Below the pieces are notes generated by a model. The model was not told the DNA's origin. It saw only the letters and a program-made list of their open reading frames with translations, and made no database searches. Position numbers and translations under genes: made by a program. A stretch of DNA of 44,899 nt from Hyphochytrium catenoides (lineage: Eukaryota; Protista; Hyphochytriomycota): positions 1 to 44,899 of the forward strand of contig FLMG01001401.1 of NCBI GenBank assembly GCA_900088475.1, read 5' to 3'. Positions 3,609 to 15,318 of this stretch are shown piece after piece (the stretch's first letter is position 1; every line of letters begins with the position of its first letter).

Positions 3609-6600
3609 GAAAAGAGAAAGCGAACAAACAACTACAAGCAATTTTTTCATCCCTACAAGGAAAGTACAAGGATCCGCATAGAAACAAGCAGTCGCGGTGC
3701 AGGAGAGAATCTGATTGTCAAGCCAGAAGGTGGCAGAATGGAAGAGAAAAGGATAACTGTCAGGAACTGACAGACACAACTCCACAGCGCTCCGACCGAC
3801 CTCCTTCACCCTTAGGGCCCCTCTGGAAAGGGGCTCGGACAATATCTCTGAAGTTCTCAAAAACTCCGCCTTTCCCTACCGCTCCTTCTCCTCCCACGGG
3901 CTCAGATAAGACCTCAGGGGACATCAACTCTGGGGAGCTCAGCGAGCCTCCTTCATCTGCTTCTAAATAGTTTATACTGGGCACGACCAGCCGCTCCCTA
4001 ACCACCATTCCTGTCTCCCTTACTGGAGTATCTTTGGTCCAATCCACGTAGCTGAACCGATACCTGAAGATTTAGAGGCGATGGAGGGGAACATAGAGAG
4101 CAGTGTCAGGCTTGTCCTCTATTGTTTAAAACCTCAATGCAAAGATTGAGAGAGAAGAGAAAGACACAGGCGGAGTGAGGCCACTAAGGAAGCATTCATA
4201 TCCAATGACAAGGGTCAGACATTGGGTTAACAGTATCTCACGCAGGTTAAGAGTAAAGGGATCTAATGATAAACGAGAGGTACCGCAAGACCTGCCAGAA
4301 AACTAATAGAGGAAAGCCGGGGAAAGAGGACAACCTCGGGAGCTCCTCTTCGGTCTCTTGAGCCTCCTTAACTATGCTCTCGTCACATTGTTGGCACACT
4401 CTAATGCCTAGTGTCGGATAGAACACCAGCGCCACTTTCTCAGACTGACAGCCGATGTACTGACAAACCATAAACTTCAACGGCAGATGGGCGTGGAATT
4501 GTTGGATGGCCTTCTCAACTCCACTCTCTCTCTGGATAGCCTTGCCAATTTCTGATAGAAGATGGAAGACAACAGCGAACGTAGGAGAACGAGAACCGAG
4601 GCTAAGCGATGCCATTCCCCATCGACTCTTTTTGCGATGCCTCTGATCTCTGCAGGGTGCGGCTTCGCTCATGTGCCATCTCAACCCTCTTCCCCTCATC
4701 TTCTCATCCGCCGATATATACACAGCTCCAATGTTGCTTACCTCCCGCCACTGTCAAGGCTTGCGAAGAGCAGGCATACTTGATCTCATCAGCCAAGATG
4801 TCCGAGGTGAGTGACGAGTAAGGCACGGCCGCGGGACCTGCACCCACACGCCGCACAGCCCGTCCCCAGAAGAATTGATCGCCAAAAAAAGGAACGATTA
4901 CTAGCAACAGCAAAATGTTGTTAACGGAAGTCAGTCAGTGTGCTTAGACCAAGAGACAAAGATAGAGACGTGGACATTTTGGAGGCAAGGGCAAGGGCAA
5001 GGCTCATGCCTCTGCCTTCTCGAAACACAGGATTTTGCCGAGAGCGAAGGTCCGCATTGCCTGGACCTACCTGTGGGCTTTCCGAGACGGAGTCCTGCAG
5101 CAGTCGTTCCGGCGCCACCGTGGTGCACTACGGCCTTACATTGCGCGAAGAGCCAATCATGCGGCGCTGGACCTATCATATACACCTAACCGGAGATTCA
5201 GTAGGAAGACAGCCAAGGAGAGCGGCATTGTAAGTCGTGAACGACAAATGCCCCCAAGAACATAAGAGAGAAGAGGAGGCGGCTAATATGCTAAGTTGAA
5301 TAATGAGACACCTGCTCGGGACAGTCTTCGACATCGCCAAGCCCTGACCATCCTTTTTGAATGATGGCTCTCTCGCCTGATTTGATCACGGCCTCGATCA
5401 CTAGCCGAGTCAGCTTAGCTGGATCCTTAACCACGATGGAACCGAATCCTAAAGAGCGCGATAGAAAAGAATGGGATGGACGGTTACTGTGATTGGGATA
5501 AACTCTGAGACGACTGGAAGGCACTTGGAAGGTTAGAGTGATAGGATCGGCCAAAACAGACGTGTGTCAGTTGTTCGCAAGAGGCAGGAGAGAGCACACT
5601 ATGGCTAGATAGCTGAACCGAGTGATATCATTTTCCCCCCCATGCCCTCATACTTTCTCAGGACTTTGGATCACTCAGTTCTACCATCAACAGGTGTGTC
5701 CATACCTATGAAGACTGGCTGGTCCCCTTTGGCGAGGAAATCTAAAAGGTCCTTGGGCGGCTGGTAGTCAAAGTCTGGATTGTCAAGGAACCACAAACCA
5801 CTGACGCCTATCCACGGCTGCCAATCCGAAGGGCGAGGGAGGAGATGCTCGCTGAAGCAGTATGTAAACGGTACCTGATATTTCATAAACAGACACCGTG
5901 AAAAGGTCGAGCAATACTGGAAGCTTGTAAAGGAAGACAGGACGCAAGCAATGGGACAGCGCCCCCGGAGAGCATAAGAAGGAAGAAAGTCACGAATGGG
6001 CAACCTGCACCCATGTAAGTATGGGGGTAAGTTGTTCTTCGAGACGGCTCGCTTTACCTGCTTGTCATTCAGAATGGTAGCTCCTCTCTTCACCTTTCTC
6101 AGCCGTAAAGTTTTTCTTCTCCACTCCTGCACGAGGTCCCGAATACCGCTCCAGATAGCAAGGTCCACGGTGAGATAGGAAAGGTACTTGGCGGCATCGG
6201 AGGTCAGCTCTGTCGTTATGAATGGGCTCTGGACGGCACGAGTGGGAGTCCAGGGCATGGTAAACGCCATGTGCTGATTGTACCAAGATCAGGGGTCGAT
6301 GGTAAGTGACGAGCAGCAAGATGATCGGGTTACGAGACGGGAACAATCAGGTGGCCAAGGCTTCAAGCATACGGCGATGTATGGAGAAGGAGAAAGGAGG
6401 GAAAAAGCGAAAAGTCATAACGTCTAAAGCATCTACTTTGTGCGCCATGGCAGAAAAGGCCTGAACAATGTAAGATGCGGACACGGGGGACAGGCTGAAG
6501 ATCCCAATGAGCTTAAGACCGGAAAAGGAGGCGAAGGGAAGTGAAAGAAAGGGAGGAGGCACATCCTAATTCTAGTTCCGCTGGGGTTAGGGGAACGCTT

Positions 6601-9600
6601 CCTGCTAGGAGGATAGTACACCCCTTGGCTTACCAATGGAATGCCCAACTTCTCAGCCACATGCGGAGCACAGAGCGAAGGAGGATTGGCGATCAATGCA
6701 TCTGCTCTGTAGAATTCATCGCCTTCTGAAGGTGTGGTGCAGGCCTGATAGACTGTTTTGAAGAGCTCTTTCATCCAAGGCCGCTTGGACCTTAGGTGGT
6801 CCAGTACCATACCAACGCTGATGAGCTTGTGGTTGACCATTGCCTGAGACGGGATAAGGTAAATGATAGGGCCGAAGAGGAGGCCGAGCCGAGTGGAAGC
6901 GGACAATGGGAAGTGATAAAAAGAAATCCAGAAGAAATAAGCGCCAAGCAGTTGGTGCCGGGTGATAAGATAAAGCTGAAAGGTTACCAGCGAGAGGTAA
7001 GATGAATATATACAGAGAGATGCCCAAGCAGAGTATAAATTCGTTCCGGGCCTCGATATATCACCGCCTTCTAGATTGCAAGGTATTCCGCTGCGCCTCA
7101 CCTCCATCAGCATCTTTGGATCTCCTGCTAAAGGGAAGAAGTCCAGACCATGGCCAGTGACAAAGTCCCTAAAGACTTCGTGGGTAGCAACCCGGACAAG
7201 ATGTCCCTTTGAGGCTAATCCTTTGCCCAGAGCGATAAAAGGTTGTACGTCCCCGCGAGAGCCCACGACTATTGAACAGAACAAGTGTCTTAGTGGTGGA
7301 GGTTAGAAGACAATGGCCGGTGGAGTGAAGTAGCACTCTGGACAAAAGGTAGCCAGAGCTTGGCGCGAGGACCACGTCTGTAAGGAGAAGCCATGGAGAA
7401 GCTAGTAAAGCGACAGACGGGGCTGTGGAGGCTGCCAAAGCAAGCACTCTACCTATAATGACGATCCGAAGTCTAGGGACTTTGAGTATTTGCTGGTAAT
7501 TTTGAGAGTGAGAGAGTTAGACACTTCTTTCGACCCTGCTACTCTGTACACAAGCAGGAAGAGTGCAGAGATTGCCGTCATATCCTTCTTAACCCCAGCA
7601 AGACGTCTGATCGCACACAGACTAAAATATAATGAGGGAGCCAGATATCTGAACGCCACTTAGCCAATGATGGACGCATAGAAGGAAGAACCCGCTAAGT
7701 ACTACCCTACCTTCTCTGCTCCTTCTTCTTTATTCACATAAAGGGAAACGGTCGTAGAGTAGAGAGCACGGAGTCTCATGATTGTCTCCTCCTTATGAAT
7801 GTTAGACTTAATGAGCTTCGACAAGATCTCTCGCAAGACCCACTGCACATTCTGCCCCTGCGAGTACCGCCTCTTCATCTTCCGCGAGTACTCTTCCACC
7901 ATCTCTTCCAGCTGCTGCTTGTGGCTCTCTCCATACTCTTGGCCCTCAAACTCTACGATCTGGCGGAGGAAGGGCTCTACCACCTGAGGCAGAACAGATT
8001 ATTGTTGGGCATATCAATCGACCTGCTACCAGCACCAGAGCCGACGGAATCACACTTTCCGTCCTGCCTCGAGTCCCTCTGCTCTTAATGTTCACACGAC
8101 CATTCGTACCTGAGGAAGAACAGTGTGCACGTTCCTTCTCCTAATGACACCCATCTCGTCCATGTACTGCCGCACAATATTCTCCACCAAGTATCCCACG
8201 GTCTGTTCTGTGTCCTCTAAGAGGAATGCGTTGTACATCCTCTCAGTCTCTGCAATGTCCTCCAAGGCTTCATTCTCTTCAGACAAAACAAACAAGGAGA
8301 GCAGATTTTCTCCGCTTTCCTCCTTAAACTTACGGCCACGCCTCAAGGAGGAGGGATCTAGGAGAGTGTAAGTCAGAGTAGAGTTTGACGGAAGAGAGGC
8401 AAGTAAAGACGCGCAGCGATGCGGGTGATGCTACGAGCAGGATGATCCCAAGACGTGAGTCACTAGAAAGCGTAAACCAGGTACAGGAACAAGAGATGAT
8501 GATCAAAAGAAAAAGGTAAGATCTACGCCGATAAACTAGTACCTGGCTCCGACTCTGAGTCCAGGTCGCTGGCTCGTAGGTCTCCAGCGTCTCCTTCTCC
8601 CTTTACGATAGACGTTCTGACAAGTGAGCTTCGCTCTGCTTCCTTCTCTACTTCCCATAGGTTGGAGCGAGGAGCAACCTGCTTCTGCAGCCAAAGCCGC
8701 CGGCGTATGAACGTGATTGGACTCTCTTTTCCTGATGTGAATTTAAAAGCTGAAGTCGAGTAAGACAAAGGTAAAGGAAGATACGAAACGAAGATGCCTT
8801 GCTCCATCTGACAGCCATGCTCTCCTTGGTATCTCTTCCGGAAGCCTTAAGCTTCATACCACCTATCTCCTAATGTCTTTGGCTGCTCATCGTTCTCCAC
8901 ATCCAAGCTCACCATCAAAGGACGTCGCGTACTGCCAACCGTCCTTATCACAAGGAAATCTATTCCTTTCGATCTGCCAGCCCTCGAGGTTCAGCCAAGG
9001 AGTCGATATGGTTCCATCTGCATTCGAGAACTTCGCGCGGCCATGCCAGCGTATATTCGTGCTGCAGAAGAAAAGGAAACACGCCATTATGAAAAAACGA
9101 TAGAGACACAGTGGGAGAAGGAAGATGTCATGGACGGACGTGAGGCTCCAAACTTATAAGGAAGTAGGATGGATAAGAGGTAGGGAAGTGAAGATGCCAT
9201 GGGGACTGCCAGCCATAGATAAAACACCATGGGATAGGCAGGAGGTTGTGCTAAACGGCACAAAGTATAGGCCAAGGCCGGATAGAGAAAGACACAAGTG
9301 ACACAGAACACCAATGAAGTCAACGAATCTCGCACTCTAGTTTCCTAAAAGAGTCACTTGGGAGAAGACTGTCTTCTCCCCGCGCCTCACCTCTTCCAAC
9401 CTGTGAGTCCGTACGTCTGGTTCTGATACACCTCTCCGGCCGGGTAAAGAGCGGCAAGGAACTCTTCCTCTGTAAGGGCTTGATCCCCGTCATCCCCATC
9501 AGATGAAAGATGCGACCAAGAATCATTGCTGCTGCCACTTTCCCGGTTTTCACCCTCTCCCTCTGCGACCTCCTGTCAATAGAAAGATGATCAGATTGAG

Positions 9601-10507
9601 CACTCGGCATAAAGCAGAGCGCCACCAGTAAAGAAAGCGCACGAAGAGACAATCCTTTGTTAGCTCCAAACCTTTGAACCTGAAGGAATGAGCAGATCGA
9701 GCTAACTAAGGACTGAGATGGAAGAATCGATAGAAAGAGAGAGAGAGAGGGAGAGAGTGATATTGAGTCTCAGACTCATCATAAGGTAGTCGACAGCTGA
9801 CCCTTAGCGCCTTCTTTATTGCCGTAAGCCATTGATCTCTCTCAGCTGCGGTGTCTGCATAGACATAAACCTTTCGAGGAGAGAACCAGTCCGGGTTTCC
9901 ATTGATGACTAGAAAGCCCGTCTCTGATGGTGATCTGCTAGGATTCACCACGTGAATACCTGCCCAAGGACCGACACCTTCCACCTAAAACAATGTGAGA
10001 GATGAGAGAATGAGAGAAGAGGAAGGAGGGAAGAGTGGTCGTCAACAAGCCAGAGTTTACCCAGCGGACGGAGCTGGCGCATGGGTTGGCAAGAGGCAAG
10101 ACCAGCACGGAGAGAGAGGGAAAAGACAAAGAGAGGAAGAGAGAGAGCGAGAGAGAGAGAGTGGGAGAAAGAGAGAGAAATGCAAAAAGGTGCACCCAAC
10201 AGATGATAATAGAGCCTATGAAAGAGAGAAACAGCAACGGGGAAACAGATCAATAGAGAGGGAGAGAGGGAGAGAAAGAGAGACAGGAAGAAAAAGCAAC
10301 CTTGATTCTAAGCACTGGCTGCGCAGGGTTCTCTCTGAAACTGGCTTTGGAGTTGTAGACCTGGATCCACTGTCCCCTCAGAAGGCAATACCTCCTCTTT
10401 CTTCGGTGCAGACGGATATACAGCTCTCCCTCCATCCCAATCGCTGCTCCTCCGCCACTTCCGCCTTCTTCAGAGGTGGCTGGTTCTTGAAGAGCATCCG
10501 AAGCCAT
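2051..10507 (-). CDS. Multidomain sterol 3-beta-glucosyltransferase-like protein (GT1, UGT51/UGT80-type), ~1370 aa, 19 exons: 10507-10301, 9984-9802, 9572-9391, 9061-8913, 8749-8543, 8276-8110, 7983-7711, 7492-7453, 7268-7102, 6843-6634, 6273-6058, 5874-5706, 5448-5312, 5185-5071, 4900-4742, 4551-4335, 4063-3810, 3414-3130, 2826-2051
   Basis: All 18 junctions are GT-AG and phase-consistent. GT motifs: [34 protein letters not shown]...[37 protein letters not shown]...[27 protein letters not shown]-terminal PH domain ([14 protein letters not shown]...[20 protein letters not shown]) and DysF domain (EVYQNQ...GW...DKDGWQYA..F...IRRRLW). Confidence 0.88.
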
Positions 10508-13179: not shown

Positions 13180-14526
13180 TTATACACAGGCTAGCTTGGT
13201 ATCACAGCTGCTGAGGCAGATGGCCAGGGCTTGCAAAGGAGAAAGAGGCCATTGAAAATCCATGGTAAAGAGATTGTTTGCAACCCTTCCAAACTGCAAA
13301 ACATTGCCCATAGAAGGATCCTCAGGGTGAATCAGCTGGAAGTTCTTGACAGATGCCATTGATACTCTGCCACCGAAGTCCAAGCAGTACGCCCCCACGT
13401 CATCTCTAAAGATTGGCTCTCTGTTCTTGAAAACCATCAGATTCTCTCCTTGTCCTTGCTGAAGACGGGATGCGAGTCTACGTAAGGAGCCTTTTCCCCC
13501 GTGAGTGGGAGACCCGCCTCCAGAGGCTACTGGAGGGAGGTCTGATAGCCTAACACAATCTTCTGATACCTCTGGTATGCAGACGCGCATCTTTCTTGGC
13601 CCAACACTCGTACGGTTCGCTTCATATGTGACTGCACCTACTTCCTCTCTAAAGAATGGCAGAGAAGCTGAGCCTGTCTCGGATGACTCAGAGCGAGAAG
13701 GCGAGTGATCTCCTGTTAAGGATAGGCTTGGAAGGTTCTGGGTGGTCTTGACGCTCGAAGTGGGACTTGAAGCCTTTTGTGTAAAGCTTTCTTCAAAGAA
13801 GGTGAAGCGAGTTCCTAGGAAGTTTGACTGCAACCTGCCAACCCGCAAGCCACCAGCTTCAAACTTGTCCGGGACGCTTAGAATATATTCACTGCCCATC
13901 GGAGATCGCAGTTGCTTTCTGGCAGTCAGGACTACCCTGTCTTCTGCGCTGCAAGATAGACCCCCATTCTCTGGCTGAAGCAGTACCTCATATACCAATT
14001 GTCGGAGAATCCCTCTCTTGCTCTCTCGCACAAGGCAGCGCATAATGCCCATGTCTAGCGGTATAGGAGAGACCGCAAAAACAGAGAGATCATCAAGCTT
14101 TAAGAGCCTCTTCGGCTTCAAAATCGACATTTCCGATGGTCCTCGACAAAGCGGGCAGGTGCTGCTACCTCCGAGCCATGCACTAATACAGCGATAATGT
14201 ACCAGGACATCACCCGCCTTGTGGTTGCTGCAAGGCAACGGATAGGCACTTCGATTGGGCGTGAAGTTGTCCATACAGATCAGACATGACTGGTCCTTGG
14301 CAAGGTCCGAGTCTGAAGGAATGCCACACACAAAATCTTGCGTCTTGTCCTCGGAGTTTGCTGGTCCAGGCCCACTTGCGACATTATGAACGACGAGTGC
14401 GGATGAAGCAGAAGACGTGGGCGGCGGGGAGAGAGGACACGCCGGTCCTTGTGAAGCCAGTGTGATATCACCCTCTGGCCGGACCGATTGCTGCATTCTG
14501 TCCTCACAGGCTAGCTCCGTTTCCAT
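13180..14526 (-). CDS. RING-H2 zinc finger + Tubby C-terminal domain protein, 448 aa, intronless CDS
   Basis: RING: CLIC...LPCSNH...VHYRCISAWL...TCPLCR. Tubby motifs: GRLQSNFLGTRFT, GPRKMRV, NREP...YCLDFGGRVSMASVKNFQL, LQFGRV...FTMDFQWPLSPLQALAICLSSCDTKLACV*. Confidence 0.92.
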   Translation of the reverse strand: METELACEDRMQQSVRPEGDITLASQGPACPLSPPPTSSASSALVVHNVASGPGPANSEDKTQDFVCGIPSDSDLAKDQSCLICMDNFTPNRSAYPLPCSNHKAGDVLVHYRCISAWLGGSSTCPLCRGPSEMSILKPKRLLKLDDLSVFAVSPIPLDMGIMRCLVRESKRGILRQLVYEVLLQPENGGLSCSAEDRVVLTARKQLRSPMGSEYILSVPDKFEAGGLRVGRLQSNFLGTRFTFFEESFTQKASSPTSSVKTTQNLPSLSLTGDHSPSRSESSETGSASLPFFREEVGAVTYEANRTSVGPRKMRVCIPEVSEDCVRLSDLPPVASGGGSPTHGGKGSLRRLASRLQQGQGENLMVFKNREPIFRDDVGAYCLDFGGRVSMASVKNFQLIHPEDPSMGNVLQFGRVANNLFTMDFQWPLSPLQALAICLSSCDTKLACV

Positions 14527-15283
14527 ACTGCCAAATTGTGTCTAAAAGGTTATTGACAGTCACTGCATTGTCTCGTTTTGTTTGCCCAAGAAAAAGCCCT
14601 TGAGAATGGACCGGCAGGCCTCGGCCGCAGGAGAACTTCAATCTCGAGAAAGAGGAAAAAGCCGTGAACAGTGAACAAGTTGTCGCCCGACGAGGAGAAC
14701 AGAGAGAGACCGAGAGAGAGAATATCTGCTATGCAGGAGTAAATTATGAAAGAGAATAGAGCTTTGTAGTCGCAGCTCGAGATCCTTGGCTAGCCAATGA
14801 CGCCAGGGAAGCTGTGCAGCGATCTCTCAGAACAACAAGAAAGAGTCAGGCAATCCTAACAGACGGACAATGTCTGTGAGATAGAGCGCGTTGCGAAGTG
14901 ACCGCAATGAGACACAGGGAGTTTGAGAAGAGACACGGAAGACGCTGGAGGAGAGAAAGAAGCACAAACCCAGCGGTGAAGACAAGATGAGAGATGGCGG
15001 CCCGTGCTCACCACAGAGGAAGAAAGACAGCGGGGAAAGAAGAATAGAGAAAAGTAACAGAGTACGACCGAAAGAGAGAGAAAGAGAAAGAGGAGAGAGA
15101 CAGAGAAGAGGAGAAAGGGCGAAAGAGAGAGAGAAAGAAGAGAAAGAAAGAGCACATACCTCTTCCCTTGTTTCTTGGCCCAATCCTCCCACAGTCCTTT
15201 GTAGCTGAATCAGAGTCACCAAGAAACAAGCACGGAAAGCATGTGCTCTTTTCTCTCTCTCTCTCTCTCTCTCTAGCTCTCTC

Positions 15284-15318
15284 NNNNNNNNNNNNNNNNN
15301 NNNNNNNNNNNNNNNNNN
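15284..15318. other. Assembly gap (35 N) inside a (CT)n tract
   Basis: N run flanked by CT repeats. Confidence 0.99.

Follow-up and report, generated by a model that had tools for sequence, protein, structure and literature searches.

Does a single gene of Hyphochytrium catenoides join two membrane-reading modules to a sterol glucosyltransferase (SGT), and if so, how did such a fusion come about? The question is raised by a locus on contig FLMG01001401.1, of which we analyzed positions 1 to 44,899, a stretch of 44,899 nucleotides (nt) that we call the window. On the minus strand, running from position 10507 to 4335, we identified a gene of 15, probably 18, exons which, as we read it with moderate confidence, encodes a peripheral SGT equipped with PH-like and DysF lipid-recruitment modules. 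A first-pass annotation had proposed this arrangement, with a PH domain, a DysF domain in exons 3-5, an intact catalytic domain of the UGT51/UGT80 type and no GRAM domain. At the level of sequence, our analysis upheld this arrangement, with the PH domain as a weak call, and arrived at the same assignment of exons 1-15, with GT-AG borders and in phase.

The region is eukaryotic and intron-rich, and the exons were derived from stop-to-stop frames together with the sequence itself. In the resulting model, built by hand and checked by script, every border of the 15 exons between 10507 and 4335 is GT..AG, the phases fit throughout and no stop codon interrupts the frame. The exons, together with three probable ones beyond position 4335, are listed here, where GT-B denotes the fold of the catalytic glycosyltransferase (GT) domain.

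Exon 1: 10507-10301, minus strand; starts at the first ATG of its open reading frame (ORF), at 10507; N-terminal half of the PH-like module; donor GTTGCT, phase 0.
Exon 2: 9984-9802, minus strand; C-terminal half of the putative PH domain, with the Trp of the C-terminal helix.
Exon 3: 9572-9391, minus strand; acidic linker, then the predicted start of DysF (last ~14 codons, ~9434-9391).
Exon 4: 9061-8913, minus strand; DysF core (W...W...DGWxYA).
Exon 5: 8731-8543, minus strand; predicted end of DysF (RRRxW arginine ladder, ~8731-8682), then an acidic/Ser-rich linker.
Exon 6: 8357-8110, minus strand; linker, in-phase GT-AG.
Exon 7: 7983-7706, minus strand; linker, in-phase GT-AG, donor GTAGTA at 7706.
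Exon 8: 7288-7102, minus strand; GT-B catalytic domain.
Exon 9: 6843-6634, minus strand; GT-B catalytic domain.
Exon 10: 6273-6058, minus strand; GT-B catalytic domain.
Exon 11: 5874-5706, minus strand; GT-B catalytic domain.
Exon 12: 5448-5312, minus strand; GT-B catalytic domain.
Exon 13: 5185-5071, minus strand; GT-B catalytic domain, EryCIII-like_C.
Exon 14: 4900-4742, minus strand; GT-B catalytic domain.
Exon 15: 4551-4335, minus strand; last GT helix and a degenerate B-box-like zinc finger; probable splice donor after 4335.
Probable exon 16: 4063-3801, minus strand; acceptor at 4064; opens with R-[YF]-x-x-W, a motif that homologues have after their B-box.
Probable exon 17: 3414-3130, minus strand; GT-AG, in phase.
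Probable exon 18: 2826-2051, minus strand; GT-AG, in phase, with the stop codon at 2053-2051.

Exon 3 has two bases over, and the script check showed that they complete a Ser codon with exon 4. Domain searches were run on single exons or on stop-free read-throughs.

The ORF covering exons 8 and 9 matched Glyco_transf_28 (PF03033) in Pfam at 1.7e-15, and exon 13 matched EryCIII-like_C. When the PDB was searched by sequence, the yeast UGT51 structures 5GL5/5XVM matched at 2e-18 over the strand GSRGDVQP, which is an intact copy of the motif G-[ST]-R-G-D-V-Q-P. The UDP-sugar motif (HHGG-x-GT ... P-x-x-x-DQ) is likewise intact over exons 13/14, where it reads HHGGAGTT...PFFGDQ. Moreover, exons 8-14 (4742-7288) cover residues 624-1029 of the best full-length homologue, P0002, colinearly. 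There is thus a strong case that the GT domain is complete and belongs to the UGT51/UGT80/Atg26 family (GT1, GT-B fold). A phmmer search with the exon 10/11 ORF against 1.84 billion representatives provided 1672 SGT relatives.

These relatives also led to the DysF module. Among the best 150 of the 1672, several SGTs carry, after the GT domain, regions that weakly match exon 4, and in P0077 (33.1 bits) and P0096 (40.5 bits) these regions are Pex24p domains above the Pfam cut-off. Six DysF domains taken from other SGTs were used to build a hidden Markov model (HMM), and this SGT-DysF HMM matched only one of the 1709 six-frame segments of the window, the exon 4 ORF, with E 1.9e-6. The tail of exon 3, exon 4 and the head of exon 5 align in order to HMM positions 4-15, 42-73 and 82-94; taken alone, the exon 3 piece is not significant and the exon 5 piece is weak. 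The Trp/Arg signature is present in the expected order (W..W, D-x-D-G-W-x-Y-A, R-R-R-x-W), and exon 4 keeps all four invariant columns (Trp/Gly/Tyr) of the DysF family alignment A2. Because the profile matches the DysF structures of TECPR1, dysferlin and myoferlin (2e-16 to 7e-21), and because two members pass the Pfam cut-off, we take the SGT-linked seed family to be true DysF. Exon 4 alone retrieved nothing relevant in the PDB sequence search and, in an atlas look-alike search, a single weak Pex24p lead (0.85). Exons 3-5 appear to encode a short, recognizable DysF domain, a call that is good at the level of the core motifs.

The PH call is weak. Exon 2 matches the PH region of the PH-GRAM SGT P0139 (31%, E 0.001 by tblastn), exon 1 has a PH-like beta1-beta4 pattern, judged by eye only, and the nearest relatives, P0002, P0154 and P0160, carry a Pfam-significant PH domain in the same N-terminal position. 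The PDB sequence search with exon 2 alone returned nothing relevant. None of the exons matched GRAM in Pfam at E up to 1, while this domain was readily found in P0029 and P0139.

Exons 6-7 encode a putatively helical linker of ~175 residues that belongs to no known family and had no usable Pfam or atlas match. Between exon 7 and the stretch ahead of the GT domain in Amoebidium P0010 there is a weak resemblance (E 1.5e-4 by tblastn, 3.5e-4 by phmmer), and when 264 SGT homologues were compared with the window by tblastn, exons 1-7 received only two weak matches, from P0010 and P0139. Exons 1-7 contain no hydrophobic segments, and nothing in them outside the DysF core matches the Pex23/24/30 peroxins.

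Where does the gene end? Position 4335 is probably a splice donor and not the end of the coding sequence: it adjoins GT (CGAG|GTTGTC) with two bases over, and homology to the relatives extends to 4334, taking in a zinc finger of B-box-like type (ANCHR-like_BBOX of Pfam in P0003). In P0003, P0017, P0025 and P0006, it is the C-terminal B-box region to which exon 15 aligns. This finger (4335-4480, minus strand) is common to several protist SGTs and here is without its middle Cys pair and His ligands. Exons 16-18, for which Pfam gave no match, would add a tail rich in Ser in which an F-[VL]-x-K-[IL]-[IL]-R-R-like motif recurs about six times, and this three-exon tail probably extends the gene to 18 exons. 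The predicted protein would then have ~1389 residues, compared with 977 if the last intron were read through. We also considered a gene end at the stop codon 4249-4247, reached by read-through, and judged it less likely than splicing at 4335. After several copies of the tail motif comes S-E-G-E, resembling a site for a basophilic kinase. Retention of the last intron would give a 29-residue hydrophobic, tail-anchor-like end (4250-4334, minus strand) before the stop at 4249-4247, which could be an alternative isoform.

How unusual is this domain combination? The nearest GT sequences are the marine-metagenome proteins P0002, P0154/P0004 and P0160, with 58-68% identity per exon. In P0002, P0154 and P0160, PH, linker and SGT lie in one uninterrupted, intronless ORF on marine-metagenome contigs, and searches of their linkers with the DysF HMM and motif found no DysF. 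At least nine other SGT clusters or loci do carry DysF, always C-terminal to the GT domain. They include an ABCA transporter-SGT-DysF fusion found as complete transcriptome ORFs in Namystynia karyoxenos, Diplonema ambulator and D. japonicum (P0031, P0077, P0096); SGT-DysF-C2 proteins (P0040 and the intronless metagenome ORFs L001:31-2178 and L012:15-2210); and SGT-DysF proteins from Paramoeba (P0068), Chromosphaera perkinsii (P0105) and an environmental source (P0147). Other SGT relatives bear FYVE, PX or PH-GRAM domains. A metagenome scan with exon 4 found no relative, and a word-index protein search with the exon 4 ORF gave no candidate. In a whole-word literature search, no paper had terms for sterol glucosyltransferases together with dysferlin or the DysF domain. 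The pairing of SGT and DysF is, as judged from these sequences, recurrent and not unique to this gene, yet undescribed in the papers we found.

Two of these groups have features of their own. The diplonemid giants P0077, P0096 and P0031 are 2242-2692 residues long and hold a full ABCA-type lipid transporter, an SGT and DysF in one ORF; we found no paper on these proteins. In the SGT-DysF-C2 proteins, the pairing of DysF with C2 recalls the ferlins.

The history of the fusion was addressed with a maximum-likelihood tree of 45 GT domains and two pieces from the window, in which intron-coded parts were masked with X. Both window pieces group with P0002, P0004 and P0160 (Shimodaira-Hasegawa-like approximate likelihood ratio test, SH-aLRT, 97), nested among SGTs. 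Seven C-terminal-DysF SGTs form a clade of their own (98), apart from the window pieces, and P0105 groups with the PH-GRAM SGTs (96). Forcing all DysF-bearing rows into one clade cost 72.6 log-likelihood units and was rejected (approximately unbiased test, p-AU 0.0002). It follows that DysF appears to have joined SGTs at least two, probably three, separate times, and the presence of SGT-DysF fusions in separate clades argues for a functional link. With respect to the other DysF-bearing SGTs, the clade placement and the topology test agree with the independent assembly that the first-pass annotation had envisaged. Its idea that DysF replaces GRAM did not survive: since the nearest relatives are PH-linker-SGTs without GRAM, this lineage looks to have gained its DysF on a scaffold that was already PH-linker-SGT, separately from the C-terminal fusions. 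The architecture had also been put forward as novel. This stands for the N-terminal order, for which we found neither a paper nor a second case, but not for the DysF-SGT pairing, given the other clusters and loci that carry it.

We propose that the product would be a soluble, peripherally membrane-bound UDP-glucose:sterol 3-beta-glucosyltransferase. At its N-terminus, two lipid-recognition modules would stand in series, the PH-like module followed by a short DysF "finger", and together they would bring the catalytic domain to a membrane marked by both a phosphoinositide and the DysF ligand. The GT-B domain would then glucosylate sterols locally at that membrane. We propose recruitment by PH and DysF because Pichia Atg26 offers an analogous case, being directed to phosphatidylinositol 4-phosphate (PtdIns4P) membranes by its GRAM domain (PMC3320016), and because DysF, as only recent work has shown, acts as a reader of specific lipids elsewhere. 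TECPR1's DysF domain binds sphingomyelin on damaged membranes (PMC10476172, PMC10476171), with a minor contribution of the TECPR1 PH domain to binding of sphingomyelin membranes (PMC10476172), while that of Pex30 binds phosphatidic acid (PMC12101077, PMC12101078), at contact sites of the endoplasmic reticulum (ER). By analogy with Pex30 and TECPR1, the destination of the enzyme may be damaged membranes, lipid-droplet contacts or ER-peroxisome contacts.

Several observations weigh against this proposal. No single exon matches Pex24p (PF06398) in Pfam, and the domain is split over three exons. On the PH side, exon 2 reaches 21.7 bits against a cut-off of 25.1 for Pfam PH (PF00169; E 2.9e-4, profile positions 53-105), exon 1 has no Pfam match and nothing relevant in the PDB sequence search, and exon 2 ranks first, with an E of only 0.12, in a search with a homologue-based PH HMM. 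The same N-terminal PH-DysF-SGT order was not found in any protein or locus searched, and both this genome and its near relatives seem absent from the collections. Sphingomyelin binding is not general among DysF domains (PMC10476172), so the ligand of this one is not predictable. Sterol is assigned as the acceptor from family membership only, and a single transcript covering all exons is something that we infer. Finally, at ~81 residues the DysF is ~15 residues shorter than the other SGT-linked DysF domains.

This last point also feeds the alternative that survives best, namely that DysF does not target membranes and serves as an intramolecular regulator (for example, a GT autoinhibitor), as a protein-interaction surface or as a decaying remnant. 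Module decay does occur in this gene, as its B-box is visibly degenerate. However, DysF retains its Arg ladder and every one of the four invariant Trp/Gly/Tyr columns, and that it was fused independently to this lipid enzyme fits a lipid-facing role; we therefore consider a non-targeting DysF unlikely and retain membrane recruitment by PH and DysF as our model.

Could the N-terminal modules and the enzyme belong to different genes? We regard it as likely that the PH/DysF exons and the GT exons form one gene. Exon 8 has an in-frame stop at 7305-7303 with no ATG after it, which leaves it no possible start codon; its only acceptor is at 7289, and it is phase-compatible solely with an exon 7 that ends at 7706. 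A donor for exon 7 at 7711 was discarded, being out of phase with the sole possible exon 8 acceptor. It is this inability of exon 8 to start, together with its phase match to exon 7, the short gaps between exons (126-417 nt) and the architecture of the homologues, that leads us to a single gene. Upstream, the nearest gene on the same strand (a RING-Tub ORF, 13183-14526) is ~2.7 kb away. An arrangement in two transcription units or isoforms, with a small PH-DysF protein from exons 1-5 and an SGT starting within exons 6-7, could draw on the fact that the joining of exons comes from an in-phase model made from sequence, on the internal Met codons in exons 6 and 7, on retention of intron 5, which would close the reading frame six codons on, and on the lack of any homologue found for exons 5-6. 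Nevertheless, gaps of 126-185 nt are too small for a terminator plus a promoter, the phases match at all junctions, the nearest relatives hold PH and SGT in one continuous ORF, and many other organisms have SGTs with a fused DysF. Such a split strikes us as slightly less probable still than a non-targeting DysF.

Least probable, and rather improbable in our view, is an acceptor other than sterol (ceramide, another lipid or a small molecule): GT1/GT28-type enzymes are promiscuous and the sterol substrate of the clade of P0002, P0004 and P0160 is a predicted one, but the best structural matches are to yeast sterol 3-beta-glucosyltransferase and annotated SGTs from plants, oomycetes and fungi surround the clade.

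Around the gene, CT/GA repeats abound across the window, intron 1 and the sequence upstream of the start codon at 10507 among their sites, and an assembly gap (a run of N, read as X in the ORF translations) lies at ~15150-15300, inside a GA/CT microsatellite. The neighboring ORF at 13183-14526, on the minus strand, is intronless and encodes 448 residues with a RING finger (zf-RING_2, 3.8e-10) and a full Tub domain (2.5e-56).

What kind of gene is this, then? With fungal Atg26/UGT51 it has in common the catalytic family, its motifs and, as predicted, transport of an SGT to a membrane by N-terminal lipid-binding modules, including a putative PH domain. In contrast to these enzymes, it has no GRAM, it carries DysF between the PH-like module and GT, and its GT domain falls in another clade, the marine PH-SGT group. 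The marine PH-linker-SGTs (P0002, P0154/P0004, P0160) are alike in their long pre-GT linker and have their N-terminal PH where the PH-like module lies here, but they are intronless and DysF-less, with linkers that show no significant similarity to exons 3-7. The C-terminal-DysF SGTs also carry SGT and DysF on one polypeptide, and exon 4 aligns to their DysF cores; their DysF, however, directly follows the GT domain, and most of them sit in a separate GT clade, with P0105 elsewhere. Compared with TECPR1 and Pex30, which both bind specific lipids, the DysF signature is homologous, and TECPR1 pairs DysF with PH, as is predicted for this gene; here, however, tectonin repeats, an ATG5-binding region and a reticulon-like membrane domain are absent, and the partner is an enzyme. 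The gene has the DysF module in common with the Pex23/24/30 peroxins and is not a member of that family, as no reticulon-like domain lies N-terminal to its DysF. On the basis of its sequence, it is an architectural variant of a known enzyme family, with a predicted function.

Both selective autophagy and stress responses have been linked to steryl glucosides. To our knowledge, it is chiefly in the fungal GRAM-PtdIns4P case that the targeting of their synthesis to specific membranes is understood. We tentatively suggest, as a possibility short of an expectation, that SGTs may have recruited DysF recurrently and convergently across eukaryotic supergroups, in at least three independent fusions, and that local sterol glucosylation would thereby be mechanistically coupled to sensing, either of a DysF ligand or of stressed or damaged membranes; we found no paper describing a lipid-remodeling response of this kind. 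From the repeated, independent DysF-SGT fusions comes a concrete hypothesis open to testing, in which sterol glucosylation would be directed by lipid sensing of the DysF type. Together, this gene, the diplonemid ABCA-SGT-DysF proteins and the SGT-DysF-C2 proteins would offer a natural panel of fusions in which to ask which lipid DysF reads.

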